The position numbers and the translations under genes were made by a program. Of a stretch of DNA of 64,000 nt, positions 14,734 through 58,060 are shown one piece after another. Every line of letters begins with the position of its first letter. Position 1 is the stretch's first letter. The notes under the pieces are model-generated. The model was not told the DNA's origin and ran no database searches. It saw only the letters and a list, made by a program, of their open reading frames with translations. Source of the DNA: Epithemia pelagica (Eukaryota; Protista; Bacillariophyta); NCBI GenBank assembly GCA_946965045.2, contig OX337231.1:372001-436000 (forward strand). Reading direction: 5' to 3'.

Positions 14734-15438
14734 ATGCCGTTGATGCATCCTCGAGTGCCAAGTCACCATTCCTCCTTGCTCACCACCACCAACACGACGA
14801 CGACGACGAATCCTGATGAAACTCATCATGGGAACCACCACAGTTGTCGCCAATCCTCCTTTGCCAAACACCAAGTCGAACCACTCAAACAACAACCACC
14901 ACCACAACCACAACCATTAGGTAAGGAGGAGGAGGAGGAGGAGGAGGAGGAGTATGGTACACCCAATGATGTCTTGTCGTCGTCCTCCTCCTTCACTGCC
15001 GCCGCCGGGTCAGTAGTACCAACCACAACCACCACACCACGCCAAACGACCCTACCCATTGGCACACAAAGCAACAACAGAAGAACCCCGCAAACCACCA
15101 AGAAATCGGTGCACTTTCAACCACCACCCAGTCCTTCACACAACAACGACAACGACAAGGACCATCCTCCTACAGTGGCTTGTACCCTGTACCACTATTC
15201 CCATTTTGACAATCCTTTGGAGAATAATGATGATTCGTCTGGTTCGTCCAATCGGTCGCTGTTTTGGACGCCTCGTGAATTGCAAGCCACGTGGGAACAG
15301 GATCAACAGACCTTGCACCAACACCCAACAACAACGACGGGCTTGCCAACCACCTATGCCCACGCCTTGCAGCGAGCGCATCAGTGGTATGCTCGTTCCA
15401 CACACTCCCCACCATCCTCCTCATCACCCGTACGGACC

Positions 15439-15476
<38 letters not shown>

Positions 15477-23805: not shown

Positions 23806-26083
23806 ATGGATCATCGTCGGTGGCACGACGAACCAGCGAATCGTCGCGGTGACAATCCTCCTCCCCGCAGCAGCCATTGGAACGGTGGTCGTTGTCACCG
23901 AAACAACCACCACAGGGATCCTTCCCAACAATGGAAAGACGATCGACGGGGAGAACGACGCCCACGTGGATGGGGCCGTATAGAGGAGGAGGAATCACAG
24001 CAGCAGCAACAACAACAACAACGAGGTTATACCGAGGTTTCGTCGTCGTCCTCGCGACACCCATCCAGGAATCGTGACCACCCAGATTCGTACGATTCCT
24101 ATCAACAACAGCAAGAACTACAAACCAAACGACGAGGTGATTGGACCATGCAACCCGTTTCCAAGGGGGGTAGTGTACAACTTGTGTGCTGAGGTGTACT
24201 ACTACCCCCTTTCTATTGTTGTACTATTCGACAGGTTTGTATCTCACTTACTGGTACTCTTGTTTCTTGATAATGATGATGATGATGATTGGACGACATT
24301 TTGACAGCCACGGAACGAGAGCCTGACAGGAGACGACAAGGCTGGAGAGACGAACGAGATCGACGAGAACGACTACGACAGGAATGGGAGTCGCAGGAAC
24401 GGCCAAACTCGGATTGGAAGTGCCTTGAGGTAAATCATATGATCGATAATAAATGACTTGGTTTCGTTGGATCAGCTCTGTGAGAATGGAACATTCAGTG
24501 GAGAAAATCATGGTGGCATTTTTCGAATGGACATCTATCTCGACATGTGTCTGTGGCTGATCCATTCCTTCCTTTTGCCTCTTGTTGTTGTTGTTGTTAT
24601 TGTTGTCAACTCCAAACAAAAACATACAAATTACAAACCCAAAACACAGTGTTTGATATGGAATTATCCTCACGAATCCAAGTGTCATGGATGCGGAGCT
24701 CTTTGGATCGACATGTATCCACCGCAACACGATAGGGGATCCACCCGTCGGCGAGAAGGAGGAGAAGAACAAGTGGTTTGCAAGGACCAGGAGGATACCA
24801 AAACAAAGGAGGAGGAAGAGGTGGATGAATTTGGACGAACTATCAAAAAGCGGAAATCCACCAACGACAAGGATCAAGATTCATCCAAAAAATCACGTCG
24901 CGAGTGGCCTCCGCCCTTTGATGAAACCAATGGTTCCGAATATGTATTAGACAGTGGGAGTGGCATGTTTTATCATGCCGATTGTGACTTTTTTTACGAT
25001 CCGCAGACCAAATTGTATTATGGCAACAAACAGGCCTGTTATTTTCGGTACGAACCGGCCAATGACCCTGATACTGCCAAGGACAAGGAGGATGATGACG
25101 AAAAGAAGAAGGAAAAGGAGACTCGAAACAAGTCTCGATTTGTTCCCATCTCTCAATCCAGTGGCAAAGATCTTGCCACGACGACCAAGGATTTGGATGT
25201 CCTGTTGGACACTAGCAAGAGTCGCACTACCACGAGTAGCAAGTCCAGCATATCCATTACCCTCAAAACCAAGAAGTTACCCAAGTCGAACCATGGCAAT
25301 CCGAACAAGCCCAAGGCACTCTCGAAAACCAAGGCACTCTCGAAAACCGACGTGGCATCCGATCCTAGTAGTACTGGCCAGAACAGTAATCCATTGCAAC
25401 GACAGCATCACATGGATATGAGTAAATGGTCCGAGCGACAAGAAGAACGGAAGCAGCAAGAGGACTCGGGTCCCACTGCTACCACCAAACGCGAATCTAC
25501 CAAAGACGACAAACCTACAGAGTCCACCAACACCACCACCAATAAAAAGATTGCACGCACAGCCAAGGGAGAACCCATGTGTGTCTTGTGTCAACGCAAA
25601 TTTCCGACGGTTGAAAAATTGCGGTACCACGAACGGGTTTCCAAATTGCATGCCGAAAACTTGAAGAAGAAAACAAAGAAGGAAAAGGATACCACAGTAA
25701 CCGAGTCCACCATGAAAAGGGAAGAAAAATACATTGATCGGGCGCAACAACGTCGGGCCTTGTATGGCGACGACGATGCAGCCCTTGCACCAGTTGTCAC
25801 GACTGTGCCCGCGATGGAATCCTCCACGACGTTGTCGTCGTCGTCGAGTACGGCTCCTGTGGAAGCACATGCGCCCACGGAATTGTTGGGGACGCATACC
25901 GTGGGCAATCAATTGTTGCAAAAATTGGGATGGAAAACAGGACAGGCCATTGGTCGACGACAACAACAACAACAACAAGATTCTAGCAACGCACAACCAG
26001 CGAGTCGCCAAACGGATACAGCCTTGCGCAAGGAATGGGAACGCATTGAAGCCTTGGCGGCATCGCAACAACGAAAGTACTAA
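23806..26083 (+). CDS. RBM5/RBM10-like splicing factor (RanBP2 ZnF, OCRE, C2H2 ZnF, G-patch)
   Basis: Exons about 23806-24169, 24308-24429, 24650-26083. The splice joins DWKCLE|CLIWNYPHESKCHGC (RanBP2 finger). OCRE YVLDSGSGMFY..FFYDPQTKLYY; CVLCQRKF..LRYHERVSKLH; KYIDRAQQRR; G-patch VGNQLLQKLGWKTGQAIG. Confidence 0.88.
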
Positions 26084-26735
26084 TCTCTTACGATTCTACC
26101 ACCCAAGTTTTTGGAAGCTTGGAAAGTCAAACTGTGTCCACACAAAACCACCTCCATCCGTGAAGCACGACCGATCCTATTGAGAAAAATTGACGTGGTC
26201 CGTCCAATTCTAGGTAGTGCAGTTTGTGAACAACAAGGAATGATGCAGTGCGTTACCATCCATCATTCGCTGGTTCGCCTTTCGACCCGTATTATACTAA
26301 GTCTGTTAAATGCCTTGATACACATCCGTCATCACATGAATACTGGTAGCGTTGGTGGACAAGCACAGAAGCAGATCCTTATAACACAGTGAGTGTTTGC
26401 AAACCCCCCGGGAATTTGTGACGGACAGCTTGGTCGGCGGGTGTGCGGAAGCAGGCCCTGTGCGCTATGGTCACGCATGCCATGCTTCAGTCGTCCGTTG
26501 GAATCCGACTTGGTCTCGCTAATGGCCGATCGAACTTATCCATGGTCGCATGCCCTTACACGTGCCCGCGCTCTCGACCCACAAAATTGGCACCTTTCAC
26601 ACTCTTGTTTCACTCGTGTGTTTCCATTTTCGTCTTGGACGGACAAGAACTACCACCATGATGACAACCACCACCAGCAGCAGCAACAACAGAGATCGTT
26701 CCCAGCGAAGAATCACCCGTAACATCTCGATCGCC

Positions 26736-27116
26736 ATGGTGGGGTTTGGGTTGTGTCTCTTGAGTGTGGTAGTGGCGGGATGGAGGACAGTTCCACGCAT
26801 TGTGCAAGAAATCATAATGGTGTCCACCACCAACGACGAACCACCACCACAAGAGCACGAAACAGCAGTCTCCTCCTCCTCCTCCTCCTCCATGCTTCGT
26901 CATCGTCGATTGCCGGGACAAGTCATGGAATTGACCGACGAAGAGCTGTATGCGGTGGGAACTGTCTTGGGTGGTTTGGTGTTGCTTTGCCTCTTGTGCT
27001 GTTGCTGCTGTCGACGATGGAGTTTGTGGGATGTGGTGGCCTGTGTTTGTCTCTACGAACTCTGTTGTGACGATCGGCGCATGGAGGATGATGGCATGGG
27101 CTTTGTCCTTTGTTAA
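26736..27116 (+). CDS. Small membrane protein with Cys-rich juxtamembrane tail
   Basis: MVGFGLCLLSVVVAG signal-like start; TM segment then LCLLCCCCCRRW...CVCLYELCC. Confidence 0.6.
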   Translation: MVGFGLCLLSVVVAGWRTVPRIVQEIIMVSTTNDEPPPQEHETAVSSSSSSSMLRHRRLPGQVMELTDEELYAVGTVLGGLVLLCLLCCCCCRRWSLWDVVACVCLYELCCDDRRMEDDGMGFVLC

Positions 27117-27758
27117 CACAGAAAGCGAGGCATTGTCGATGCGGACTCTTTTGACGACAAAACTGCAAGAACATTCTCCTCCTCTTCTTCCTTCTCCGCC
27201 TCCTCCTGACCGACTCGGACGAGAAACACCAGGAAATGACTCTTTCCTTGGGGTGGTGGTCCATGGCCAACATTGCTACGGAAACTTGACTCGTTGCATT
27301 CCACCAGCTGTGGAACAAATAATATAAGAGTCCGTATCCCGAAAAGAAGCACGGCTCGTCCGGTGGTTAGGGTTCCAGATTCCATACATGATGCATGAGC
27401 TCCACAACGATATATAGTACCTAAGTAGATAGTTTCTTTCTCAGATTCAGCATTCTCCTTTAGAGGAAATTCTTTGCACGTCGTGTGTGTCTATAGATAG
27501 TTTGGAGTCTGTAGGAAAGATTACAAGACATGCGCTGTGCCTTGTGTTACAACATGGGTTCTGCTTTCTGACACGGAACGGTGCTTCACTCAGGCCTATT
27601 TTTGAATGGCCCACGCGTAAGGAAATGATATGCAATCAACCTACCAACCAACCAACCGCAGTCACGGTGGAATAGAAAATGACGTGCATAACTTACTTCT
27701 AACGACCCTATAGACTTGGACAACGACGAGAACCCATACGTCATGGAACGGCAACGGT

Positions 27759-29128
27759 TTAATCGGTTTTGAAATGCAAATAGGCACGATCGGCCAATTT
27801 TCGGGGTCGCAACAATTGTTTGGCGGCAAAAAAGACACCGGCTGCCAAACAAAAGTATCCGACATAGGTAAAGGAGGGTCCAAAATAAATGTTGCGTCCT
27901 CCAAACATGGTATTGGTGGTCACAATCAAGGCCTTGCTCCCACGAAATCGTGTCACAACGTAATTGGCCGTGACTTGAAAGGTAAGCTTGGTACCCTTGG
28001 CAATGGGCCGATCGAACCAACCATAGAGTTTGCGAAAGGTGGGTTGCAAGGCGACACGCATCCACACGACAAAGTGTTCGTTCGTGACGCCTTCGAGAGG
28101 GGAAATAATGCCTTCGTAGGTTTCGTACAAGTATTGTGTCGTATTGTCGCGAGGATAAAAGAAGCGAAAACACTTGCCCGTTTTGGTATCATTAAAGGGT
28201 TCATCACAAGACCATTCCTCCCCGTCGCAACATTCGGGTGTACAACCAACATCTTCGGGACATTCTTCACTCTTGAATCCATCGGGTTGCGAAAAGAGCC
28301 AATCCAAATCGGATTGCCAGGCAATGCCGGTTTCAATCATGGACAATTCCACTGGATTTCCCTCCGGATCAATGCCTTCTTGAAAGACAAAGACATCGTT
28401 GAAAAAGGTATTGGCAATCATCCCACAGGGATTCAACGTGATATTGCCGAGTTGATTAAGGGGATCGCATCGCTCGCGACTCACCTTGTCTTGATTGCCT
28501 ACTTGACCCGCCAATTGAAAATCGTCCCTCGAATTGACATAGGCCCGATGATTTTGATGAAAATTGGTCAATTCGTAATAGACCAAAATGGGTGGTTCCA
28601 TATCCTCGGGGGCGAAAAAGGTAATGTCACACTGTCGACCATCGTTGAAGCGTTCTTCAATACCGCATTCCGGAGGATCTTCGTCTTGCGGATTTTCAAT
28701 GTACTTGTCGTAGACGCGTTTCAATTCCACCACATCGTCTTGCATCGATGTGAGTTTCAATCCTAGAATGGGAAGAACCACAACGGACAACAACCACCGG
28801 CAAATTAGAACAAAACGCAAGTTTAATCAACAAAACAACAACAAGAGTCGATGGGCATTCCGATCTGCTTCAATAAGCGCACATAACCTTCATTGCATGA
28901 AGACTACCAGCAAGACCAGATTCCCACTGGGCTCTAACAACAACAACAACAACCACAAAACGTACCGGTGGGAACCAAAATGACACCCAAATAAAAGAGA
29001 GAGATAATGACCCAGACCGGATCCAAAATGGGATGCCATGCTTGAACGCGTTGTTGATGCAAGGCATCGTCTCTCGGACGATTGGTTTGTTCCGAAATAT
29101 CCAAAACGTCTTCGTCGTCGTTCTCCAT
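27759..29128 (-). CDS. CDC50: CDC50/LEM3 family P4-ATPase flippase beta subunit (2 exons)
   Basis: Exons 29128-28966 and 28762-27759; HQQRVQAWHPIL, ILVYYELTNFHQNHRAYVNS, PCGMIANTFFND, NEHFVVWMR, FGGRN motifs. Confidence 0.95.
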
Positions 29129-29701
29129 TGTGTGTTGTTTGTTTTGAATGCTAGCTAGTGCGGAAGTTTTCGGAAATGCACTTTGTCAAGGCTCCAAAAA
29201 GAAAAAAGGTAACACAAGGGCCACAATTGGTTCTGCTTCCAGTCTCCAATCTCCAAAAGAAGTCGATCAAGGAGGCCACACAAAAACAAAACGGACTACG
29301 AACGACGAATAGTCGAACATCGCGCGGCGCCCACTCGTGCGGAGCTGCGCAGTACTCCAGACCACTCTTCATCTGTCATGGACGTCGGGTCTTCTAAAGG
29401 ATCCTTTGTGTCTGTTCAGAGTTGGTAGGATGGGTTGTAGTACTGGAAATTTGAAACCGTTCCGCGCCGACCGGAGCACCTCGTCCGGAAGCAGCATGTG
29501 TATGTTACGGCAAACTCGTCTGTCCACCCGTCGGATAGAATGCGCACGCTTGTGGGGCGCCCGACGAGAGAGTGTTCGTCATAAAATTCATACGGTGCGT
29601 TGTCTTCATCCATCATGGCTTGTGTCTGTAACACACAAGGTTCAAGAACTGTGCAATATCCTTTGTTATAGGATTACCGGGACTATGTATAAACAGTAAC
29701 T

Positions 29702-32947
<3,246 letters not shown>

Positions 32948-32999
32948 TGTTGGGAAAGTGTCTTGTCTGTTGTCGTCACGCTAATAGAATACGTAGAGA

Positions 33000-33345
33000 G
33001 ACTTTGTGATGCGCGTTCCAGAACTCACACACTCACAGCAAGAATAGAAGCTACTGGAGGACACGATCGATGATACTCTGTCCCACAATACAGCACAGGA
33101 AGCAGAGGAATCTCTGATGATGGTTCAGGGCGGACTTTGGAGTGAGACGAACGACGACGAAAAAAATGGACAAGGCGAAAAAGTCACCCACTGTCGTCAG
33201 CGGCGAATGGCATGACTCTTTTACGCGACTGGGTTCGTACTCTCTTTCGTACGCATGACAAACACCATGTCCTAAGGCTCCACGCAAAAAAAGTTTCGTT
33301 TTCTGTTTCCATCACAAAAATCAGAAAACTTGGGTTTCGGCGTAA
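33000..33345. promoter_or_regulatory. Upstream region of the ABC gene, repeated at about 47690-47865 and 57740-58030 (likely ancestral bidirectional ABC/kelch promoter)
   Basis: Shared blocks gatgatactctgtcccaca, gaatggcatgactcttttacgcgactgg, ggctccacgcaaaaaaagtttcgttttctgtttccatcacaaaaa. Confidence 0.6.
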
Positions 33346-33797
33346 AGCACAAATACCACACAATAGATCTGCAACTTCCGGTAACTTCACGTGAGTCGCA
33401 TATTCTATCCCAATACCCAACGGACGAAACCAAAACGAAGGATCGATATTAAAGCAAAGTACGAACTATGATACCATAGAATATGATTTGCCATTCTCTA
33501 GTACGGAACAAACGGGAATGTCGAAAGGTATGTCGTTCGATATGTCGAAAGGTATGTCGTTTGGTTACCTACGCAGGCTCGTGTACTCGTAACATGGTGG
33601 CTAGGGTTAGTCCCTACCCACACAAGTCCCGAAGGATTTCTTACTGTTCTAGGCCAACTCTAACGGGTGGTGCTGTTAGAGAATCTCGGCCGTCGGATCC
33701 ATCCACGTTCATGGATGAGATCAGCCATACTTTCCCCTTCCACAATAGAGCCGCGTTCCATCGTTCCAACGAACCAACTGTCCCTCCCCCACAAAGC

Positions 33798-35438
33798 TTA
33801 TAAACAAAACATGGTCAAATAAAGGCGGTCCGCAAAGGTCCAAGAATCATATTGTTTGTCAATGGGTTCCGAGGAGCGCTTGAGTCTCCACCGAGCGTGT
33901 TCGTACAGTTGCGGGCCCGACGCCAAACGGGTACCGTCGTCCTTGCGCCGTTTAGTGGCATGGGATCGAGAGCCACGACGATAAGAGTGCAACGACCAAA
34001 ACTTATCGGGAATGGTGTTGCCTGCCACGTCGTCGAAGGCACGGAGAAAAGGGTCGCCTGTAGATTGGAGATGCTCCAAAAACGGGTGAAGAAAGCATGA
34101 CCGAAAAAACGAAGATGACCAAATCCGTCCGTCAGAATGGCGGAACACATAGCGTGGGTCCTGGGCAATGTCACCGAAAGGTAAATCCGCCGCCTGGGCC
34201 CGTCGAAGCCAGCGGCCACATGACAAGCCGGACAAGCTGTCGAAGGAAATCACCACGTCCACGGCGGCAGATTGGGAAGATTTAGTGGCCGGTCCCAATC
34301 GGAGACCAATCATTCCGACATTCGGGGGTAAGTCTTCCCTCGGACCGTTCCGTGGGAGAGTGACACGGATGTCACGCCATCGGAGATTGAAAACTTCGCT
34401 CCCACGGAGCCACCCCAGCCAGAGAATGGTATTAGCCAGGCCCACTAAGGCCCACGTGCGCTGAACCGAAGAACCGACCGGAGCTTGACGGTATTGGGTC
34501 TGAACGAAGGTATCAAAGGCTGCAACATGTCGACCAAGAAGGGCTGTGGACGGCCGGGTCTCCGTGCCCAGACGGACCGACAGGCCGGTGGTGAAAAGTG
34601 TCATCCCCAACTGGTCCGTGGAGCGGGCCTCTTGAAACAATACACGGTTGTGGGTGTCCAGACGACACGGGCGCCCGGAATGAAGAGGGGCGATTGCTTT
34701 GTGTTGCGAAAGAGCACTGCGTAGCCCCCGGATAGTCGCAAAGGTTGAGGTATCACCAAACCGGCCGGGCCTGAGACTGTACACTTCTGCCGCCCACATC
34801 AAAGGAATATCGGCTCCACAAGGTGGACGGATAGGACGGTCCACCGTCAGGAAATCCAAACCCGGAATTCGAGTCTGGAACTCACGTAAAAACCGCAACT
34901 TCTGTTGGTATTGACGGTGAGTACCTGGTGCCCAACGATGGGCTATGTCCAAGATACGGAGACGCTCCAGGGCCATGAGTCCGTAATCGACACGGCTGTG
35001 GAGTTCCCTATCAAGGACCGAACGAACTGTACAGCCCTCACAGATGAAAAGAGGCCATTCTCGAATATGGGGAATGGTCAGACCCCGTCCATCTTCAAAG
35101 CGAGTAGGGAAAGGTGGACCGGCACGGATACAGTGTGTATGGTACGAGACACCACACGGGGTGGCCCGTCCGCCGTGACGGAAAGGGAAGCCTGTCGTCC
35201 GAAAACAGCAATCCACCAAACTTTCAGAAGGGTAAAGAGGCTGGAGGCAGCTCCCGCAGAGCCGTCGCCTGTTGTTGATGCCATTGTCGTTGGCTATGAT
35301 ACCGGGGAATGGAATCGGTGTCCACGTCCCTGGGTAAAAGACGCACAAAACAGGGTAAGTGTAAGACCACAAAGGGGATAGGCAAAAGGGGAGGATTGGC
35401 CAGAGGCCAATCACCCGGTTTCCACGTTCCGACTTCAA
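33798..35438 (-). CDS. Tyrosine recombinase with N-terminal Cys/His finger
   Basis: Catalytic set WLRGSE (R), ATKS (K), HSYRRG (HxxR), HARW, DKQY (Y). Confidence 0.9.
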   Translation of the reverse strand: MKSERGNRVIGLWPILPFCLSPLWSYTYPVLCVFYPGTWTPIPFPGIIANDNGINNRRRLCGSCLQPLYPSESLVDCCFRTTGFPFRHGGRATPCGVSYHTHCIRAGPPFPTRFEDGRGLTIPHIREWPLFICEGCTVRSVLDRELHSRVDYGLMALERLRILDIAHRWAPGTHRQYQQKLRFLREFQTRIPGLDFLTVDRPIRPPCGADIPLMWAAEVYSLRPGRFGDTSTFATIRGLRSALSQHKAIAPLHSGRPCRLDTHNRVLFQEARSTDQLGMTLFTTGLSVRLGTETRPSTALLGRHVAAFDTFVQTQYRQAPVGSSVQRTWALVGLANTILWLGWLRGSEVFNLRWRDIRVTLPRNGPREDLPPNVGMIGLRLGPATKSSQSAAVDVVISFDSLSGLSCGRWLRRAQAADLPFGDIAQDPRYVFRHSDGRIWSSSFFRSCFLHPFLEHLQSTGDPFLRAFDDVAGNTIPDKFWSLHSYRRGSRSHATKRRKDDGTRLASGPQLYEHARWRLKRSSEPIDKQYDSWTFADRLYLTMFCL

Positions 35439-38400
35439 TTACAAATCGGGACAGGCCGGTCCACATGTGGGCTAGGGTACGGGGGACAAACACAAGGCAC
35501 GAGGTATCCAGGGGTGACTCCACCCAAGTTTCCAGAATAAAAGTGAGGACTTGGCGAGCCAACTCCGGAGGAGGGAACCAGACGGTAAGTTGTCCAAGTA
35601 CGAGCGCCGCCCGCCAGGGAGACTCCCAGGGCGTATAAACCCAGTCAGCCCGCAGACCCAAAGTGTTTACAAAGGTATGCACTAACCCCGGGTCATAGGC
35701 CAGTGGGGCGAAGACGGCACCGGTTAGTTCTCGTTGAGAGAGTCCGTCATGAAGAGAACTGAACCAAATTCCCCGACTGAGACCATCCGTTCCTTGGAGG
35801 ATCATGACGAGTCCAGGAACGTGTACCACCACAAGCTGAATGAACAGGTCCAACTCCATCAAGCGGATGTGTTGAATTAAAGCCTGTAGTCGCGGAGAGC
35901 GTGAGGATCCGTTGTGCATGATCCAATACGTGGTACTATTATCCGTGAAATAGAAGATAGTAGTACCACGTAGTACCGACTGATCCTGTTGATACAAATG
36001 CTCCATTGTAAGGTCCAAAGTACGAAGTTCTTTCCAATTTGAAGAGAAGGAATAGATTACGGGCGTCCACTGTCCCATCCACGTAGTAAGAGGTTGGTCG
36101 GGAACAATAAAAGTCCCTCCCGTCCCAGTGCCACTACCATCTCCAAAGGTGGGCACTAGCGTGGCTGAGCGTGCTGACCGTGCCGGTCGGCCCACATCTT
36201 GCCGCAAAAGAGTCTTCCACCAATGCAGTTCTTGTTCCATTGTCGGTGTCAACTCTACCGATGTATAGTACACATCTTCACCAGCCTCGTAACCTGGGGG
36301 GTGAACTAGGCTGTGAAAAGATCTCAAGAAGGTATGTCCGATACGTGAAGGAGTCGCTTCCACCATCGATTCGAGAGTTCCACTGACCACGGACAGTGCT
36401 AGCCGCGACATCGCTCTTGGTGTCTGCAACAGGTGTTCAACCATTGCCAGAGCTCGCTCCCGTTTCGCCACTGGGATCCGGAGAGTTGGTATGCCTCGAG
36501 TATCGAAAATGAAACCCGTGTATCCCTGCACCTGAGACGGCGGATAGAGTTTACCCGGATGACAAAGCATCCCTACTCGGACCGATAAGTCCAAGAAAAC
36601 CTGTAACCCTTCCTGAGTCGACTCTTTGTCGGGTCCGTGGATGAGGAAATCATCCACATGGACCCACGCTCGGACAGCAGGTTTGTTTCCGTCCCGTCGC
36701 TTGAACACCAGACCGTATCCCCATTGCGGATTGTATTTATCGAGAACGATTGAGGTCCACCAACAATTCGGTTCGCCCGTAACATTTGAAAAGACAGTGT
36801 CGCCTTCTCGGAGGGCGCGCAACATACTTAGACCGTACCGACACGCCATAGCCGGGGAGTTTCCACTGCCCATCGGGAGTCCAAGATAGACCAAAAGAGC
36901 CAGCGTGACCGGGTGCAGTATGCCCAGCCATGGTCGGTCGTCCGGGTGGGTGGAAAACTGGTAAAAGAATTTACTAGCGTCCACCACCGCCGAATACCCG
37001 CCCTCGTACATCTGTTCGAGAATATGGACCGGACGGTTCAAATAAACTGGATCCGCGGCTATGTAGGCATTTTGTCCGCCGTCCTTCATGTTAGAAATAA
37101 CACGCCATTGGCCTGGTTGACCAGGTTTGGGAACACAGAAAAGCGGTCCATCGCATTGCACGTCCGTTCCATCCGGTAAGAAACCAACCACACCTAGATC
37201 CACCAACTCGTCCACCAACTCCCCAGCCACTTGAACCTGTTCCGGGGTCATTTCCGAGTTGGGGTGGATCATGGTCGGGGGATGCTCCAAGAAATTCATG
37301 GAGCTCCCCTCTCGAATGGCATCTCGATGTAGAGGGGAAAACTCCCACCAAATAAGCTGCAAGTGCCGAGCCTTGGGCCCCTCCGTCGTATAATTTCCAC
37401 GATGTGTTTCGAGAATCTTCTGTCCCTCTCGTATCAAATCTGCTGCTTGGTTACCATAGTCCTGTGCTACCTCGATCAGTCGTTGCATTCGTGCCTGATA
37501 CCACTCTCCCCCTTCTCTTAAATCCGGGGGTCTCCACTCAATGGGATGGGTATCTGGGTCTCCTACCAAATGTTGGTCGTGGAGGGCTTGTTTGTGGAGT
37601 ACTTCCTCTACCCGTAGATCCGTGTCCACTTGTTCACTCGGGGATTCGATCCAGGAATCCGGACTCCCTTTCAAGAGTAAGGATTCACTCAAAAACTCCC
37701 AGTGAAAAATGCTCGTAGTTGCATTTAACATTCTCGCCGTTAGGGGTGCCACAGCCATCTGTTGCTTCGTCACTCCCAAACCTTTGGCCATTTCCTCAAG
37801 TGTGAGTCTCCGAATACCTCGGGAGTCTCGTATCCACGAACCCGGTCGGCTAGGCATTGCCTCCACTTGAGGGTCACTTATGTAGGCTTTCTCCGGCACT
37901 AGGATTCGATAAGATCGTCCAGGTACCAAACCCACGGGCATCAACAGATTACTCATAGGACGGGCTTGTCCAACGACGTCTTTGGGTTGCCAGCACCAGA
38001 GATGTTGTCTTATCTCAGACACTCGTACCACAATTAGGCGGGTTTGTTGTATAGCTCCTCCCACGGTGGTGGCGTTCACCCGTTGAAACCGGGAGAAGTA
38101 TCCCAATCCTCGCCATCTTGTTTTAGTACACTTGGACATTGGCCCTTCAGCCCATTCAATAGCCCGATCGGGCCACATTTCAATGACCACTTGTGGTCTA
38201 TCTTCACCAGGAGTAGTTGCAACCATCACTTCCCATCTGCTGCGCTGATCAACCGTGCGGCTGGAAGGGGCTCGGGAGAAATGGCCCCTTTCCACCACCA
38301 GAACGTCAACTGGATGCTTCCTCAATAGTTTAGGCGTTATCCGTCCCTTAGGATATCGGGTAACCGCTGTGTCGATGCCCTCTCCAACCGAGAACCGGTG

Positions 38401-38625
38401 CTCCATCGAGGTCCAGGCCTCGGCCACAGTGGCTATACCACAATCGATCGTACCAAATGTCTTGGGCTTCCAGGAGTCTACTTGTTTGTCTCCCAATGCC
38501 GTCGTTCTAGGTTCGTCGGGCTTGGGTTGTTTCATTCGAACACCTGTCACTTCTCCTATCTCAGCCCCCTTTCGGTCTGCTAACTCTACTACAAATACAA
38601 CGCGAGAAATGAATGTAAGTATCAC
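35224..38625 (-). CDS. Pol: degenerate C5-MTase-like domain + reverse transcriptase + RNase H + DIRS-type MT-like domain
   Basis: RT: LFCVPKPG, VVDASKFFYQF, LPMGSGNSP, VHVDDFL. RH: FGDGSG, NWKEL, FTDNS, HVPG, TDGLSRG. C-terminal WFPPPE..VFVP..W. First ATG at 38535. Confidence 0.92.
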   Translation of the reverse strand: MILTFISRVVFVVELADRKGAEIGEVTGVRMKQPKPDEPRTTALGDKQVDSWKPKTFGTIDCGIATVAEAWTSMEHRFSVGEGIDTAVTRYPKGRITPKLLRKHPVDVLVVERGHFSRAPSSRTVDQRSRWEVMVATTPGEDRPQVVIEMWPDRAIEWAEGPMSKCTKTRWRGLGYFSRFQRVNATTVGGAIQQTRLIVVRVSEIRQHLWCWQPKDVVGQARPMSNLLMPVGLVPGRSYRILVPEKAYISDPQVEAMPSRPGSWIRDSRGIRRLTLEEMAKGLGVTKQQMAVAPLTARMLNATTSIFHWEFLSESLLLKGSPDSWIESPSEQVDTDLRVEEVLHKQALHDQHLVGDPDTHPIEWRPPDLREGGEWYQARMQRLIEVAQDYGNQAADLIREGQKILETHRGNYTTEGPKARHLQLIWWEFSPLHRDAIREGSSMNFLEHPPTMIHPNSEMTPEQVQVAGELVDELVDLGVVGFLPDGTDVQCDGPLFCVPKPGQPGQWRVISNMKDGGQNAYIAADPVYLNRPVHILEQMYEGGYSAVVDASKFFYQFSTHPDDRPWLGILHPVTLALLVYLGLPMGSGNSPAMACRYGLSMLRALREGDTVFSNVTGEPNCWWTSIVLDKYNPQWGYGLVFKRRDGNKPAVRAWVHVDDFLIHGPDKESTQEGLQVFLDLSVRVGMLCHPGKLYPPSQVQGYTGFIFDTRGIPTLRIPVAKRERALAMVEHLLQTPRAMSRLALSVVSGTLESMVEATPSRIGHTFLRSFHSLVHPPGYEAGEDVYYTSVELTPTMEQELHWWKTLLRQDVGRPARSARSATLVPTFGDGSGTGTGGTFIVPDQPLTTWMGQWTPVIYSFSSNWKELRTLDLTMEHLYQQDQSVLRGTTIFYFTDNSTTYWIMHNGSSRSPRLQALIQHIRLMELDLFIQLVVVHVPGLVMILQGTDGLSRGIWFSSLHDGLSQRELTGAVFAPLAYDPGLVHTFVNTLGLRADWVYTPWESPWRAALVLGQLTVWFPPPELARQVLTFILETWVESPLDTSCLVFVPRTLAHMWTGLSRFVIEVGTWKPGDWPLANPPLLPIPFVVLHLPCFVRLLPRDVDTDSIPRYHSQRQWHQQQATALRELPPASLPF

Positions 38626-38761
38626 GCATTGTTATGTAAACCTCATAAAAGTAGAGACAGTTTTCCTTGGGGGTGGGGTCCGAAACAGGAGCCTCGAGGT
38701 TGGCTTTTCAGCCCGTCGCGGCTCGCTAGCATACTTGACGATTCCTCTGCTGTAGAGCCTT

Positions 38762-41707
38762 CTATAATCCGGCTTCGGCCCGAACGGCCGCGATTGCCGA
38801 AAGGATATCCTCATCCGTTGAACTGGACGGTGCTCGGGCCTTTAATGCATCCGAAAGTGATTTAGCCTTAGCCCGTCCGGTCACATCCTTGAGGAGCGCC
38901 ACCGCATGGATGGACTTATAAGTGTGGAGAGGGCACTTGGCGGTGGCATGGCCAAGACGGTGTTTGCAATGTCCGCATCGCGTATTACTGGAGGGCGAGG
39001 AATTGGTTCCTCCGCTGGCTGATGCTCGTCCGACTCCAAGTCCATCTCCGAGAAGAGTGTTATGCGTTTCAACGCGTTTCCACATGACACGATAAAAGGA
39101 ATTATCGTGCCATTTCTTCTTATATCCGTCTCGTAGAACAATGTAAACCTCTATAACCAGGTCACGGTAGTTCTCAGAACGTTTGCGCGTATCCGCCAAC
39201 TTTGTTCCCCAATATTTGACCATAGTTTGTGCAAAGGACCCCTCCCATTTGCCGTCCGCATAAAGCCGACTGGCCTGGATAATCTCCTCGAGGAGAGATT
39301 TATAATGGGAGATGCTCCGCAGGATCAGACGTGGGGCCCCACCGGAGTCAACGTTTTGTCCAATAGTCTCTGGGCCGTAGCCCCGGATCATCATGAAAGA
39401 CTTTAACTGTTTAGTCTGAGTCTTCCAGTCGTCCTCCGCGGCCTTGCTCACTCTCTCAGTCAAGTTCTCCAGATCCTCGATAGACTTGACGCTTAGTAAC
39501 GGCGTGTTCCTGGCGGCCTTATATAGTAGAGCTCGACCGGTTCTCGCTCCCCCAGTGCTCACTTGAGATAGAGCGATGGCCGTTATCTCCATCGTTTTCT
39601 GGAGATCGTCCCTTCGATTGCCGTCCCAGCCCTGATCTGTGCTACTGCCGGGTAAAGCCGCCACATCCATGCAACGCTCGTACAAACTAAGTGTGTCCTT
39701 ACCTTGTGCTAACCCATCCGGCACGAGTGGTGCCCTGTCGATTGCTCCCTGATCGATCACGCTGAGACCAAAAATCCTTGTGTCGTCGCCCGCATTGGGA
39801 TCCGTCCCAATCATAAACAATGGAGGTGGTTGTGACCGATGCACAGGCATCGTTCCACCCCCCAGTGACGGAGATCCAATTCCTGTTCCGACGGGCGGGC
39901 CTCCAAGATTACCCGCAGGAGGGCCCGTAATGGTCTGCGTATACTGGGAACTACCCCCAACGATCGGAGATGGCGTCGTCGGGGAACTGGGAGCGGGCTG
40001 GGTTGCCCACTGGATGGCTCTGTCACGTGTGGGGAGACGTTGTTTCCACTCATAGCCCTGACCGATATAACGCTCGACGGCTGCGAATCCTTGTGCCTCC
40101 GGCACACACACCCGATGCCATGGCTGGTTTCGTTGAAGACCGATATACCAGTCGGGCACAGGTACCGGTGGGGCGGCGGGGGGACCAGCATTGGTCTGTT
40201 GGATTCCTCCAATAACACCATCCACCGAGGTGGTATAATTCGTACCAGCCGTCGGGGTGAGATTTGTTGGTGTTGTTGACCTTGCCGTCCGGGCCCGGCG
40301 ACGATCCTGGTACAACTGCATCTGGGTCTGAAACCACTGCGATGCCGAGGGGTTGTACCCCAGAAAATGGCGTCGTATACTCCAGCCCCCCTCATCGAGA
40401 AGACGTCGAACGTTGTCTGCTTGAGTTTCTAACCGCGGATAATCCTCCTGGTTCACCAACCCTAGGACCAAGTTCTGTCCACGTTGGGCCAGACGAGGAT
40501 CTTCCTCACCCGCGGCGGTGGCTTCCTCCACTCGTACGGTAACGCCTTCCTGGTGGATTCGCATCTGGATACGATACCACGCCATGGCTGCATCCCAATC
40601 CTCACCGAAATATTCCTGGATAGTCCACCCTCCTTCCTCGGCTAAAAGCCGTTGGAGATCCTCCTGATTATCCTCTAGACGAGGAAAATTATCCTGATTA
40701 GTCAGCCCCACAATGGAGGTAGCCGCGTCTTGCAACTCGGGCCGTCCCAACGGAGGATTTCTTGGGGGAGGATTACCCGTCGGTCCACGTCGGCTATTAC
40801 GTCCTGTATCTTCAGTATTTCTCACAGGGTTGTGGCTCTCATTACGCCGGGTATACTCGTTGCGACCATCTGTCGTGGTGGTTCGCATTCCTTGGGCATT
40901 TTGCGTTGGTTCCTGACCTTGTCCTTGGGTTGTAGCCGTGGGTCGTGCATGAGGCTCGTTTCCCGCTCCCAAGTACGTCGGGTCTCTAGCCTCTACTTCT
41001 TGGTCCAGGCCATCGTGGTCAAGTCGCCGTTCCGCAGCGAAACCTTCACCAGCCGCTTCCAGATCCATCTGTTCCGCCAGGCGTAGCTCACCGTATTCAT
41101 CTTGTGAATAGGAACGCAGATCCTTTCGGCCGTGAACTATACCGCCTCTGGTGGGCACCCCCATATAATAAGCAGAAGTACCTCTCGCCTGGACATTGGC
41201 TTGTTTCTGGCGGTGTCCTCGAAGATTACACTGGGTAGCCCAGTGTCCACAGTAAGCCATGACTCGGCCACGTTCTTGTCCTGGAAGCTTGCAGGTCATA
41301 GTGACTCTACAACGGTCGTTGCTCAGCCACACCAAAGTGCGTGTAGGAGGAGCCTCGTCCACCGGTATACTGCCTTGAGAACTTTGGTCCCCCTCCTGAG
41401 ATGCTTCATCATCCAAAGGGCCCCGATCAGTACGCTGTTGCCCTTCTTCTTCGTCGTCGTCGGCGGTGTAGTATCCTACCCCGGGACGTTGCTCTCGTTC
41501 TTCGCGTCGCAACTCCGTCTCTCGGTTTGCTTCGGTCGGGCCAAATTGGACCCGCTGTCGCGTTCCTCCTCCAGCCTTGTTTCCCTGTCCACCAGGGGTA
41601 CGATGCGGAGTTCGCATTTCTTCAACTGTCGTGCCCAGGGATTCACCCCCTGGGCTTTGACACTCGCTGGTCAAACCGGAAGATAAAGGACCGGAGTACA
41701 TCGTCAT
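38762..41707 (-). CDS. Gag-like ORF (981 aa)
   Basis: First ORF of the element; N-terminal C..C...CGH...C...H motif, three internal related modules, C-terminal CGHCKHRLGHATAKC knuckle. Confidence 0.8.
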   Translation of the reverse strand: MTMYSGPLSSGLTSECQSPGGESLGTTVEEMRTPHRTPGGQGNKAGGGTRQRVQFGPTEANRETELRREEREQRPGVGYYTADDDEEEGQQRTDRGPLDDEASQEGDQSSQGSIPVDEAPPTRTLVWLSNDRCRVTMTCKLPGQERGRVMAYCGHWATQCNLRGHRQKQANVQARGTSAYYMGVPTRGGIVHGRKDLRSYSQDEYGELRLAEQMDLEAAGEGFAAERRLDHDGLDQEVEARDPTYLGAGNEPHARPTATTQGQGQEPTQNAQGMRTTTTDGRNEYTRRNESHNPVRNTEDTGRNSRRGPTGNPPPRNPPLGRPELQDAATSIVGLTNQDNFPRLEDNQEDLQRLLAEEGGWTIQEYFGEDWDAAMAWYRIQMRIHQEGVTVRVEEATAAGEEDPRLAQRGQNLVLGLVNQEDYPRLETQADNVRRLLDEGGWSIRRHFLGYNPSASQWFQTQMQLYQDRRRARTARSTTPTNLTPTAGTNYTTSVDGVIGGIQQTNAGPPAAPPVPVPDWYIGLQRNQPWHRVCVPEAQGFAAVERYIGQGYEWKQRLPTRDRAIQWATQPAPSSPTTPSPIVGGSSQYTQTITGPPAGNLGGPPVGTGIGSPSLGGGTMPVHRSQPPPLFMIGTDPNAGDDTRIFGLSVIDQGAIDRAPLVPDGLAQGKDTLSLYERCMDVAALPGSSTDQGWDGNRRDDLQKTMEITAIALSQVSTGGARTGRALLYKAARNTPLLSVKSIEDLENLTERVSKAAEDDWKTQTKQLKSFMMIRGYGPETIGQNVDSGGAPRLILRSISHYKSLLEEIIQASRLYADGKWEGSFAQTMVKYWGTKLADTRKRSENYRDLVIEVYIVLRDGYKKKWHDNSFYRVMWKRVETHNTLLGDGLGVGRASASGGTNSSPSSNTRCGHCKHRLGHATAKCPLHTYKSIHAVALLKDVTGRAKAKSLSDALKARAPSSSTDEDILSAIAAVRAEAGL

Positions 41708-42094
41708 ACGATCAACACCCCCCCAACTGAATCCAAAAGAAAAGAAAAGGAATCGTAAGGTGTTGTCGTTGTTGCTCCGTCTTCGTGAGCCACGATTGTC
41801 CTAGAGAACAATCTCTGCAGCTTTATGAGCGTACAGTGTTCGCTTCCTTGATGATCCCTCATCCGCGACCTGACTCGACTAAACCTTCCAATTTGGGGAA
41901 GCGGGCAGATGTCGTTTGATGTTGTTTGATGTCGTTTGATGTCGTTTCGGGCTCGCGCGCAAACATGGTTTGCCTCAAAATCCAGCGGTTTTCATTCAGT
42001 TGATGGGTCAACCGTCAATGATTGACTCGTAACGTTGTGATTTCTCTTAAAGAAATTCAACTGCTGGAGAGTACATATTCTTTTGGCGATAAAA

Positions 42095-42187
42095 ACATCC
42101 GACATCCTCCGACATCCTCCGACATCCTCCAACATCCTCCGACATCCTCCGACATCATCCGACATCCTCCGACATCCTCCGACATCC
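42095..42187. repeat. 10-bp tandem repeat (GACATCCTCC) x8 plus partial units
   Basis: Read directly; two variant units (aacatcctcc, gacatcatcc). Confidence 0.95.
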
Positions 42188-42397
42188 GTGACTCTGGATG
42201 TTTTCCTCATATTGAAATAATCTGTAGCTACCGTAATTTGCGGATTCCTGTCCCCCCTATAGTCCTGTCCCCCCCCCCCCCCCCACCCAGTGATGTACAT
42301 GGATCTCTAACTTTACCAGGAAGTAAGCTACGTTAGGTTTGAATACACTACGTGATTCGTGACATTACGAGCTTTCCATCGGTGTATCACACGTAAC

Positions 42398-42865
42398 ATG
42401 GGGTTTTCTCTGACGGGAGATACCATCAATATTGTGGGCATTGAGGCCTCATCAAATGGCCGATGTTGTGAAGAAAATCCTATTTGTGGTATTGTTCTTC
42501 AACACAACTCCCTTGTTCGAATCAGACTTGTCCAAATAACCATTTGTGGAAAAGAAGAGTCGGCGCTGGCTGTATTCTGGGTGACAGATGGGGTGGATCG
42601 CTGCAGAGTTGGGTTTCTTCCAAGATACTACAAGAAGAATGCCCATCTCTATGATGGAAAGCTGGCTCAAGTCACCGAGTTTTTAAAGGATTCAGAGTTC
42701 CCTTCAGAGAGGGAAAAGAGTTACAGAGGACGTGGTGTTTGTCGTGCTGCTTTAGTGGAAGTTGTGGAGACTCCACCAAGAAAACGTTCACTCAGTTCCG
42801 TATCAAAGGATGATGATGAAGACCAAGACAACAAAAAGAAAAAAAGCATCAGTTCTATAGCCTAA
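42398..42865 (+). CDS. HIRAN-like passenger protein inside the pogo element
   Basis: 155-aa ORF from ATG 42398: INIVGIEASSNGRCCEENPICG...SALAVFWVTDGVDRCRVGFLP...YDGKLAQVTE. The A-x-V...VGFLP pattern resembles HIRAN; basic C-terminal NLS-like stretch. Confidence 0.6.
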   Translation: MGFSLTGDTINIVGIEASSNGRCCEENPICGIVLQHNSLVRIRLVQITICGKEESALAVFWVTDGVDRCRVGFLPRYYKKNAHLYDGKLAQVTEFLKDSEFPSEREKSYRGRGVCRAALVEVVETPPRKRSLSSVSKDDDEDQDNKKKKSISSIA

Positions 42866-44194
42866 TTAATCAATAGAAATACTGTCACTTGACAAACTGA
42901 GTTCTTGCATACTATCTTCCAATTCTTGGATTGTTTCTGTCGGTGTAGATGGAGCAACCTCCCCAGGAAAAAATGAGTATTCTCCATGTCGCCAGGCATG
43001 CCTAATGATATCCCCATCCAATTCCTTTAAAGCCATGTCACACCACTTGGCAATGGTAGGACGACTTGGAGGAGTTGTCTTATCCTGTGCAAGTCCCTCC
43101 TCCAACATGTATTGCTCCCAGGCCGCTCTAATCCGATTTTTGAGCGGCTTGTTGATACCAACATCAACTGGTTGGCAAAGGGAAGTACATCCACCAGGGA
43201 TGTACTCCACTTCAACTCCGAGTTCCTCAATGGCAGTATTCACAGATGACATCAAATGACACTTGTAAGAGTCAAGGAACAACAAGGGGGTAATTCCTTC
43301 TGGGGCTTTCTGCGCCCATGGTTTCACCACCTTCTCTGCCCACTCAAGACAAATACGCTCATCCATCCATGCTTTTGGCTGTGCTGCGTAAAAGCAGTCC
43401 TTGGGATAGTCGTTCTTATCATCTGTAAACTCTCTGTTGATTCTTCCATTGGCTTTACCTTTATAAACCATGTAGGGGGGGAGCATCTCTCCATTTGCAG
43501 TCACAAACACAGCCAGCGTCACCCTCATTGTACTCCCACTGGACGCCCTTACATGTACACTTCTCGACCCCTGTGTTTCAAGTGTAGTGTTAGGAGTCAT
43601 TGAGAAAAACACAGGGGTCTGGTCCATATTCGCAATGAAGTCTTTATGACGACATGGCTGTTGAATCAATGGAAGGACAGACTGGACAAACTGCTTGGCT
43701 TCTTCTTGTTTTTCTCTGGGATGGGTTTGCGCCTCGTGGGTCTTTGATCTGATCACAATACCCTTGGCACGGAGAATGCGTCTGATTATTGCATACTTAG
43801 CTGTAGAGCTCTTGCGACGCAAGTTGTTGTCCATCTGGCATGCCATTATGACAGCCATGTTGGTGGACACTGGCATTCCAGACTCTCTCAACTCCATGAT
43901 CTTGTCCACCAGGTCATCTGCCTTCGGAAAGGTTGTCTTCCGGCCAAAGTGGACAGAGAACTTCGACTTCTTGGAATCGTGGCAAGCCTGTAGGAGCGTT
44001 GGCATTTGCTTCATCCATCGTCTCAACTGAGAGGGATCCACATCTTCATCTCTTGCCAGCTTTTTTAAAGAAAAGTTGGCATCCAATCTACGACCTCTCC
44101 TCAGTTTGTTGCAGATCTCCACCTTCCTTTTGTTGGGAATGAAAACCCGACATCGCTTTGGGACGTTGATGTGGTCTTCATCCGCAGCGTCCAT
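42866..44194 (-). CDS. pogo-family DD35D transposase
   Basis: HTH/CENP-B-like N-terminus; NMDQTP, FLDSYKCH, 35 residues, QPVDVGINKPLK. Intact ORF from ATG 44194. Confidence 0.95.
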   Translation of the reverse strand: MDAADEDHINVPKRCRVFIPNKRKVEICNKLRRGRRLDANFSLKKLARDEDVDPSQLRRWMKQMPTLLQACHDSKKSKFSVHFGRKTTFPKADDLVDKIMELRESGMPVSTNMAVIMACQMDNNLRRKSSTAKYAIIRRILRAKGIVIRSKTHEAQTHPREKQEEAKQFVQSVLPLIQQPCRHKDFIANMDQTPVFFSMTPNTTLETQGSRSVHVRASSGSTMRVTLAVFVTANGEMLPPYMVYKGKANGRINREFTDDKNDYPKDCFYAAQPKAWMDERICLEWAEKVVKPWAQKAPEGITPLLFLDSYKCHLMSSVNTAIEELGVEVEYIPGGCTSLCQPVDVGINKPLKNRIRAAWEQYMLEEGLAQDKTTPPSRPTIAKWCDMALKELDGDIIRHAWRHGEYSFFPGEVAPSTPTETIQELEDSMQELSLSSDSISID

Positions 44195-44557
44195 GGTCAA
44201 AAGCTCTTACACGCAGTGATGAGCGGACCTCCCACCACCGAATCAAAAAAAGCGCGAAAAAACACTGTCTTGTAAATAGTACTACGATATGGAATCTTAT
44301 GGAATCTTAAAAAAAATTTACGAAAAATTTACGTAGTCCTGTCCCCCCCCCTCAGATTTTTTGAACATTCCGGGGGGACAGGAATCCGCAAATTACGGTA
44401 GTATGATCATATCAGAGGTATTACTGTGTGATACTGAAGAAAGGAAACATCGTGACGATACTCTGAGTAGTAGAAGGATTACCTACGTTTTGATTTTGAG
44501 TCCATTACCGGAAGTTGCTGTAAAAATAAAAAAAAGCGTAAAGTGAATCAACTGTGT

Positions 44558-47332: not shown

Positions 47333-47982
47333 GGTTGATTTGTGTGTCCTTCTGCTTTGTTTGTTTGTGTCGTCGTTGCTGTTGAGTTGTCCGTATCTCT
47401 CGTGGCTCAAATGGACGATCATCGATCGACACATTTCTTGATTCTCATTTTTCTTTGCACAATGGAGATACCAACATGCAGCATACTAATCGGGACCATT
47501 ACGTGTGTATCTATACCTCTCTCGAGAGAGAAGTATTAGTAGTAGTAACATGGAACTCACGAGTTTTCACCGTGTACGGTAAACGACGCACGTGAGATGC
47601 ACTACCTGGACTAGTAGCGTCCGAATTCCGGAAGGTCGACCAATCGTCAGGTCGCTGTTTCCTCGAGAACCTTTAGGTAGAACACGTGGGTGCACCACTC
47701 CAGAAAAGCTACTAGAGGACAAGATTGATGATACTCTGTCCCACAATACAGCACACGAATGGTTCGGTGGACTTTGTGGAGTGAGACGATCCGACGACGA
47801 AAAAACCAAGGCGAAAAGTCACGCAGCGGCGAATGGCATGACTCTTTTACGCGACTGGGTTAATTCTTGTCATTCGCCCATTTCCCATCCCAATTCCCAA
47901 TTCCCAATAGCCATCTCCCCCGTTACAAATCTTCGAGAGAGGTGAAAACCCAAATCTTCTGTTGGACAAAGTGAAGAGAGCC

Positions 47983-57607: not shown

Positions 57608-57720
57608 AATGGACGAAATTCATTCGGATTGGTTTGACTTTCTTCTTCTTGTTGTCCGGACCGTGGGGTGATGCCATTGGGCAGTTGCGATTCCACATTC
57701 CACAGACCTTCCAGTCATTG
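57608..57720 (-). pseudogene. Duplicated, frameshifted 5' end of the ABC gene fused to the DUF6824 fragment
   Basis: Matches 32835-32950 (MTGRSVE...PNEFRP); junction at 57607/57608. Confidence 0.85.
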
Positions 57721-58060
57721 TTGTGACAGTGTGTTCTCGTCGTCGTCACACGAATAGAATACGTAGAGACTTTGTGATGCGCGTTCCAGAACTCACACAC
57801 TCACAGCAAGAAAAGAAGCTCGATCGATGAAACTCTGTCCCACAAAATACAGGAAGCAACAAAAACGGCTGATGGTAGACTACGACGAGAAAAAAAATGG
57901 ACCATGTCGTAATCAGAGAATGGCATGACTCTTTTACGCGACTGGAATCTTACTCTCTTTCGCACGCATGACAGACACCATGTCAAGGCTCCACGCAAAA
58001 AAAGTTTCGTTTTCTGTTTCCATCACAAAAATGGCGTAAAGCGTAAAGTGAATCAACTGT

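Follow-up and report, generated by a model that had tools for sequence, protein, structure and literature searches.

A DIRS-like retrotransposon of the diatom Epithemia pelagica carries, at the N terminus of its Pol protein, a true homologue of the C5 cytosine DNA methyltransferases from which the catalytic residues of these enzymes have been lost. The element lies within a stretch of 64,000 nucleotides (assembly GCA_946965045.2, contig OX337231.1, positions 372,001 to 436,000), which we refer to as the window. The domain comprises a Rossmann-like catalytic lobe and a small target-recognition lobe and spans Pol residues 55-319. It is kept by purifying selection and probably serves as a nucleic-acid-binding "pseudo-enzyme", one that standard domain searches fail to detect. 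An earlier, sequence-only reading of the same DNA had proposed a degenerate C5-methyltransferase fold at this place; all of the motif strings that it quoted are present, in the order that it gave, on the minus strand at 37696-38457, inside the intact Pol open reading frame (ORF).

Fold and homology of the N-terminal domain

The structure of the domain was predicted with AlphaFold2, without templates, from an alignment of 60 sequences (the window domain and 59 short relatives). The model has high confidence values (predicted local distance difference test, pLDDT, 91.9; predicted template-modelling score, pTM, 0.89). Strands and helices alternate along it in the canonical manner: beta1 to beta4, a helix, beta5, and a further helix are followed by the beta6-beta7 hairpin, a lobe of less regular structure, and finally the motif IX and motif X helices. 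When the model was compared with the PDB using Foldseek, the top match was M.HhaI (E=2e-11; query template-modelling score, TMq, 0.71), with 323 of 327 columns aligned, i.e., over the full length. This was followed by M.MpeI, the fission-yeast and insect Dnmt2 proteins, M.HaeIII, human DNMT2, and DNMT3A/B; the PDB matches listed were C5-methyltransferases only, and no other fold was among them. In BFVD, the named matches down to E=1e-4 were cytosine methyltransferases of giant viruses, phages, or herpesviruses, with the exception of a 1154-residue phage protein named as a DNA polymerase. The structural comparison thus bears out the fold that had been proposed from the letters.

Sequence profiles lead to the same family. 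A profile of the 60-sequence family was searched against 177,635 PDB sequences, and the eleven best matches were all to M.HhaI (best E=0.0088). The match covers M.HhaI residues 105-166 without gaps, corresponding to motifs VI-VIII, and a weaker colinear stretch covers residues 270-314 (motifs IX-X). A profile built from a smaller alignment again matched M.HhaI and nothing else (E=0.075). When the 60 relatives were scanned singly against Pfam, six matched PF00145 (best E=2.3e-6), which was the only family matched by more than one of them. Ten relatives with more canonical-looking glycine loops gave a single, weak match to PF00145. Identity of the domain to M.HhaI-type enzymes is 13-14%. Foldseek, the family profile, and PF00145 agree, and the resemblance to C5-methyltransferases is more than chance.

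The window domain taken alone (residues 31-315) has no match in Pfam at E<=1 and does not reach the gathering threshold of PF00145. Nothing relevant was returned by a single-sequence phmmer search of the PDB or by searches of NCBIfam and PHROGs; an acid-phosphatase match in NCBIfam (E=0.095) was dismissed. A tblastn search of phages for a true C5-methyltransferase to serve as comparator gave a chance match alone (E=9).

Relatives, lost motifs, and selection

Relatives of the domain are numerous. A word-indexed search with residues 31-340 identified four proteins, and an exhaustive phmmer search with residues 45-335 against 1.84 billion cluster representatives identified 394 at E<=1e-3, including 232 at E<=1e-10 and 67 at E<=1e-30. 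Each match represents a cluster at 50% identity. Their sources are metagenome assemblies (ENA, JGI, and Logan) and one NCBI genome. The clade is abundant, with at least 394 such clusters, mostly in marine metagenomes, and it is represented in a named diatom genome.

A search with the remainder of Pol, from the reverse transcriptase to the C terminus (residues 370-1100), found more than 100 Pol proteins that are 50-59% identical to the window sequence, of which one is from a named organism, Cylindrotheca closterium. All 90 of the Pol relatives with at least 1,000 residues carry the N-terminal domain (median start at residue 26), and it is thus a fixed feature of a large clade. Relatives are 35-45% identical to the window in this domain, versus the 50-59% of the reverse transcriptase-RNase H part. 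One 750-residue Pol relative (P0352, 53% identical) is labelled in NCBI as belonging to a metagenome-assembled genome of Plesiomonas shigelloides; a eukaryotic contig placed in a bacterial genome by faulty binning is almost certainly the explanation.

The positions of motifs I and IV are based on the secondary structure of the model and not on alignment to a real enzyme. The M.HhaI residue numbers Glu119, Arg163, and Arg165 were taken from PDB entry titles, and spacing was taken from the M.HhaI residues in the profile match. Motif counts were made in two sets of relatives and are given as pairs. The Pro-Cys of motif IV, expected between beta4 and the next helix, occurs in 0/134 and 0/90 relatives (0/224 in all), and Cys does not exceed 6% in any column of this loop. 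Glu-Asn-Val of motif VI is found in 0/142 and 0/90 (0/232 in all), and Glu-x-Trp in 132/142 and 90/90. For motif VIII, Arg-x-Arg is found in 0/142 and 0/92 and Gln-x-Arg in 111/142 and 88/92. The Phe-x-Gly-x-Gly cofactor loop was identified in 2/76 and 0/71 relatives, and the position at the end of beta2 that is expected to be acidic shows no such conservation (8-28%). Across the entire domain, no column has Cys or His at 80% or more. The sequence-only reading had noted that Pro-Cys was missing and Glu-Asn-Val altered in this one element. The motifs are absent across the relatives, not just from the window copy, so the loss is ancient and general.

Other positions have held their place. The spacing of Pro144, Tyr176, Gly189, and Arg196 in the window domain is identical to that of Pro113, Tyr145, Gly158, and Arg165 in M.HhaI, which puts Arg196 in register with Arg165 and Gln194 in register with Arg163. 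Arg is present at the Arg165 register in 84% of relatives, and Gln at the Arg163 register in 90%. Overall, 52 columns match the window residue in at least 80% of sequences. Conservation is lowest in beta1-beta3, which form the cofactor half, and in the loop that follows beta4 (2.5-2.8 bits of entropy), and it is highest in beta5-beta7 and motifs IX-X (2.1-2.2 bits). Near-invariant polar residues include Glu149 (94%), Lys165 (93%), Asn226 (97%), Glu278 (97%), and Glu310 (100%). The recognition lobe is the most variable part of real C5-methyltransferases, whereas 16 columns of its equivalent here are conserved at 80% or more.

Selection was evaluated from related loci (L numbers). A pattern scan recovered 24 metagenome loci that are 35-50% identical to each other, and the domain is free of stop codons in 20 of them. 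In the one moderately diverged pair (L011 and L013, 72% identical) the proportion of nonsynonymous differences (pN) is 0.198 versus 0.864 for synonymous differences (pS), the latter being saturated. A close pair (L024 and L025) has one nonsynonymous and five synonymous changes. A comparison of nonsynonymous and synonymous rates (dN/dS) among L005-L010, nearly identical copies of a single relative, was dropped, as these differ at no more than 14 nucleotides and had been chosen for identical proteins, which is a source of bias. We also rejected, as a test of selection, a comparison of the window with locus L003 from a second assembly (ENA ERZ21939226). L003 shares the host flank of the window, so it represents the same insertion in another haplotype or strain, and the nearly neutral difference between the two copies (pN/pS ~0.65) reflects only drift after insertion.

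One explanation would be that the likeness to C5-methyltransferases is an artefact of chance or modelling, or that the domain is a neutrally decaying relic. It could draw on the failure of the window sequence to match Pfam, NCBIfam, PHROGs, or the PDB, on a first model from five sequences that was poor (pLDDT 40.9), and on the near-neutral divergence of the two copies at one locus. However, three independent lines agree on the fold, and the model was made without templates. Decay is excluded by conservation over hundreds of clusters (394), by the 20 of 24 copies that are open, and by a pN far below pS. Near-neutral drift between copies at one locus is expected for any insertion and is therefore uninformative about selection in the lineage. 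We consider this explanation extremely improbable. As a structural match was found and neutral decay was excluded, the core of the sequence-only reading stands: a domain with the C5 fold that is dead and under selection.

Possible roles of the dead domain

We think it likely that the domain is a captured C5-methyltransferase homologue, catalytically dead, which has been retained as a non-catalytic, nucleic-acid-binding module of Pol. The ancestor of a large DIRS-like clade in diatoms and other marine protists would have captured a C5-methyltransferase. Losses throughout the clade comprise the Pro-Cys nucleophile (motif IV), Asn-Val (motif VI), the first Arg in motif VIII, and the canonical glycine-rich cofactor loop. 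With these motifs lost, methyl transfer by the known mechanism is impossible. The strongest constraint is found on the face formed by beta5-beta7, on the equivalent of the recognition lobe, and on motif IX; in real enzymes these parts face DNA. We suggest that catalysis and cofactor binding were given up and that the face meeting nucleic acid was kept. The module would hold Pol on either host DNA or the complementary DNA (cDNA) of the element, and might do so through engagement of a cytosine.

Several points weigh against this explanation. The proposal that the conserved residues face DNA is based on equivalence of motifs, not on geometry, and the conserved Glu149 is offset by one residue, towards the N terminus, from Glu119 of M.HhaI when the two are aligned without gaps. 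The Glu conserved at 94% and the Arg present at the Arg165 register in 84% would also fit residual chemistry on a flipped base. Conservation in the recognition lobe could equally reflect a protein partner. Finally, residue 65 is Ala in the window and acidic in 78% of relatives, so this copy may deviate from its family.

The domain might still have enzymatic activity, with a flipped base or RNA as its substrate, through non-canonical residues or by a different reaction. The near-invariance of several polar residues (Glu149, Lys165, Asn226, Glu278, and Glu310) is consistent with such activity, as is the good Foldseek match to Dnmt2, an RNA methyltransferase of the same fold (E=9e-10). We judge it improbable, however, given that the loop after beta4 has no conserved Cys, Ser, or His nucleophile, that the cofactor half is the least conserved part, with a non-canonical glycine loop in 145 of 147 relatives, and that beta2 does not end in a conserved acidic residue. 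We also give little credence to an oligomerisation or folding module, in which the domain would have no ligand of its own and would serve as a stable N-terminal body of Pol. Such a module would account for the presence of the domain in 90/90 full-length relatives, always at the N terminus, and for its faster evolution relative to the reverse transcriptase-RNase H part. It would not predict that the best-conserved columns are polar residues of surface type at motifs VI, VIII, and IX and in the recognition lobe.

DNMT3L and DNMT3B3 are inactive members of the animal DNMT3 family in which the C5 fold has been kept by selection after loss of catalysis. Complexes containing DNMT3B3 and DNMT3L occur among the Foldseek matches in the PDB. 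The host cytosine methyltransferases of diatoms are chiefly of the DNMT5 type and methylate transposons. The domain could act as a DNMT3L-like protein-protein scaffold or decoy, diverting or recruiting host cytosine methyltransferases and not binding nucleic acid. This would fit a fold that is under selection although its catalytic motifs are gone, the DNMT3A/3B/3L-type chains among the structural matches, and the silencing of diatom transposons by CG methylation (PMC9998398). In the structural comparison, however, compact enzymes that possess a recognition lobe match best (TMq 0.71 for M.HhaI), with DNMT3-type chains at TMq 0.5-0.55. Like DNMT3B3, DNMT3L lacks a recognition lobe, whereas conservation here is strong both in the equivalent of that lobe and for the Arg in register with Arg165. 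DNMT3L and DNMT3B3 also differ in being host regulators that pair with active DNMT3 enzymes, while the window domain is encoded by a mobile element. The ratio of observed to expected CpG is 0.92 in the element versus 0.94 elsewhere in the window and speaks neither for nor against a decoy. Overall, we regard a scaffold or decoy as unlikely.

A further possibility, which we raise tentatively, is that the dead domain is a reader that engages cytosine or methylcytosine and is used against host silencing or in the choice of landing sites. It might occupy CG sites on new cDNA and thereby block diatom methylation marks; alternatively, it might direct Pol and the putative recombinase towards chromatin or sequence in a particular state. 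If true, this would be the first pseudo-methyltransferase of a mobile element and a new way for a transposon to handle host epigenetic control.

Close counterparts of the domain have been described in other retrotransposons. Active DNMT3-type domains were reported in the DIRS-like Pol of Symbiodinium (SymbioDIRS-Dnmt3), and also in a Gypsy element of Klebsormidium (PMC5890265; de Mendoza et al. 2018). SymbioDIRS-Dnmt3 resembles the window element in having a domain of the C5-methyltransferase fold inside a DIRS-like Pol ORF, a separate recombinase ORF (recombinase-like in the window element), and purifying selection on the domain with saturated synonymous sites. It differs in that it is detectable with PF00145 and keeps the key catalytic residues, and one such domain methylates CG de novo, whereas the window domain has no Pfam match and Pro-Cys and Glu-Asn-Val are absent from all relatives sampled. 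The window domain is nearest to M.HhaI-type structures with a recognition lobe, not to DNMT3 as in SymbioDIRS, in the structural comparison.

A 2026 preprint on EpiLTRs and DAM-DIRS elements describes long terminal repeat (LTR) elements that combine adenine and cytosine methyltransferases (10.64898/2026.05.21.726589; Fernandez-Moreno et al. 2026). These are likewise retrotransposons with domains of DNA-methyltransferase type, some with two kinds per Pol, but they are of the LTR type, and their adenine and cytosine methyltransferases, which are accompanied by a chromodomain, are catalytically intact. In the window element the cytosine-type domain is dead and an adenine-type domain (PF05869) was not detected. 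The prokaryotic and viral type II C5-methyltransferases, with M.HhaI, share the two-lobe fold with the domain over its full length (TMq 0.71), and motifs VI-VIII and IX-X are colinear. Relative to M.HhaI, the domain lacks Pro-Cys and Asn-Val, has Gln in register with Arg163, departs from the canonical cofactor loop, and is fused to a reverse transcriptase and RNase H.

Active cytosine methyltransferases of retrotransposons are known from dinoflagellates, a charophyte, and more recently from green algae and Euglena, and all were found via the Pfam DNA_methylase model. The present clade is invisible to that model, so surveys that use it would have missed it. In a full-text literature search, with most subscription journals outside its coverage, we found no catalytically dead C5-methyltransferase domain of a retrotransposon and no description of this diatom clade. 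The clade suggests that a captured methyltransferase can lose catalysis wholly yet stay indispensable to its element, and it points to a non-enzymatic use of the base-flipping fold. Because diatoms silence transposons by CG methylation, the domain offers a concrete handle on the interplay between mobile elements and silencing. The family should also be useful as a new annotation model of the Pfam type.

The rest of the element and its surroundings

Table 1. Features of the DIRS-like retrotransposon (window coordinates; aa, Pol amino acid positions unless a protein length is given)
Feature	Position	Strand	Basis
Coding span of DIRS-like (tyrosine-recombinase-type) retrotransposon: gag-like ORF, Pol, ORF3	33798..41707	-	three intact ORFs
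ORF1, gag-like, 981 aa, middle part low-complexity	38762..41707	-	position; no Pfam match
Pol ORF, 1133 codons stop to stop, intact, first ATG at 38535	35224..38625	-	uninterrupted translation
N-terminal C5-cytosine-methyltransferase-fold domain without catalytic residues (aa 55-319)	37669..38463	-	stretch modelled at high confidence
beta1 and loop at motif I position (aa 57-63); aromatic-Gly-x4-Gly replaces Phe-x-Gly-x-Gly	38437..38457	-	model, alignments
beta4 and start of loop where motif IV Pro-Cys is expected (aa 104-114); no Cys	38284..38316	-	model, alignments
beta5, motif VI-like (aa 143-151); Pro 99%, Glu 94%, Trp 97%; Glu-x-Trp replaces Glu-Asn-Val	38173..38199	-	alignments
Motif VII/VIII-like hairpin (aa 173-200); Gly-Tyr, Gly-Gly, and Gln-x-Arg conserved	38026..38109	-	ungapped profile match to M.HhaI 105-166
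Target-recognition-domain equivalent between motifs VIII and IX	37816..38025	-	16 columns conserved at >=80%
Strongly conserved Arg-Pro-Met-x-Asn-Leu-Leu-x-Pro within the recognition-domain equivalent	37942..37962	-	alignment; Met-Pro also conserved
Motif IX-like helix (aa 271-284)	37774..37815	-	weak colinear match to M.HhaI 270-314
Motif X position (aa 304-310), Trp-Glu; Glu in 100% of 70 sequences	37696..37716 (motifs IX-X together, 37696..37815)	-	alignment
Reverse transcriptase core	36550..37134	-	RVT_1 E=9e-4 in window, under the curated cut-off
RNase H-like region, bounds approximate	35770..36168	-	order of conserved acidic motifs alone; no Pfam match
Conserved C-terminal Pol domain with Trp-x-Pro-Pro-Pro-Glu	35326..35769	-	21 invariant columns in 15 sequences
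W-F-P-P-P-E string after RNase H (aa 1016-1021)	35563..35580	-	translation
ORF3, 546 aa, overlapping the end of Pol	33798..35438	-	N-terminal Cys/His cluster and recombinase-like C-terminal half

The window contains one copy of the element. Its order of gag, Pol, and ORF3 is common to the related loci L001, L004, L005-L010, L014, L017, and L024, and relatives have an ORF of 734-905 residues at the position of ORF1. In the window, Pol is read in a different frame from gag, with no overlap between them, and ~230 nucleotides (38535-38761) lie between the gag stop and the first ATG of Pol.

The curated cut-off for RVT_1 (29.6 bits) is exceeded by three of the eight Pol relatives scanned, with scores of 34-38 bits (P0002, P0004, and P0113, the last from assembly GCA_024449705.1). 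For the region after RNase H, the sequence-only reading had proposed a second domain, resembling a DIRS-type adenine methyltransferase. The WFPPPE string is present and the domain is conserved, but the likeness to adenine methyltransferases is unconfirmed: neither the window nor eight relatives match PF05869 at E<=1, the model for recognising the DIRS methyltransferase domain (PMC3783388), and a 15-sequence profile found nothing relevant in the PDB. The domain has no other match in Pfam and none in PHROGs.

Neither ORF3 of the window nor that of 11 relatives matches the tyrosine recombinase family PF00589, and a PDB search likewise gave no recombinase. The C-terminal half of ORF3 has invariant Arg, Lys, Arg-x-Gly, His-x-Arg-Trp, and Tyr residues in the canonical order of tyrosine recombinases. 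Five Cys or His positions in its N-terminal third (33801-35342) are invariant in 12 sequences, and ORF3 in 3 of 12 relatives gave faint matches of PHD-finger type (E about 0.1). Judging from this pattern, the Cys/His cluster may be a chromatin- or DNA-binding zinc finger. A Pfam scan of the element matched no protease or integrase family. We call the element DIRS-like, not a proven member of that group, because of its gene order and the recombinase-type residue pattern.

Three search approaches identified no terminal repeats in the window, neither inverted ones with an internal complementary region nor split direct ones, and terminal repeats were also not found in L005, L014, and L024. L001 is the only relative in which direct repeats, of 515 bp, flank the coding part. 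Within L001 (1-9161) the 515-bp unit occurs twice before gag and twice after ORF3, a second gag follows, and the unit length is 8346 bp, a layout that reflects either tandem copies or the assembly of a repeat-bounded element. Other tandem repeats were found in the non-coding ends of relatives, with 64-bp and 55-bp units in L024 and eleven copies of a 27-bp unit in L014. In the window, about twelve tandem copies of a 10-bp unit (42078-42197) lie between the start of gag and a neighbouring DNA transposon.

Locus L003 matches window positions 25875-40239. Its Pol has two premature stops and two in-frame indels but no frameshift, its ORF3 has two premature stops, and the element contains one nested Copia-type insertion; the window copy is free of all of these lesions. 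Between the two assemblies the element is 99.2% identical and the host flank is 97.2% identical (mismatches alone), with 41 gaps. Given these values, the element region looks younger than its flank, perhaps owing to gene conversion or recombination between haplotypes.

The DNA transposon adjoins the gag end of the element (42228-44401). It has perfect 30-bp inverted repeats (42228-42257 and 44372-44401) and encodes a 443-residue protein on the minus strand (42866-44197) that matches the DDE_1 transposases of pogo/Tc1 type (E=5e-24). A dispersed repeat of ~190-490 bp (76-77% identity) was identified at 33048-33235, just past the ORF3 end of the retrotransposon, at 47706-47861, and at 57608-58032, as well as in L003 (15297-15780); it is probably a small non-autonomous element.

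Host genes were also predicted in the window. They include an 895-residue ORF at 14662-17346 that has no Pfam match and a 518-residue ORF at 60642-62198 with a match to DUF6824 of 26.3 bits, relative to the Pfam cut-off of 27 bits. An ABC transporter at 31184-32944 is 48-58% identical to proteins of Amphora, Mayamaea, Cylindrotheca, Nitzschia, Pseudo-nitzschia, and Seminavis, and these named relatives place the host among the raphid pennate diatoms.

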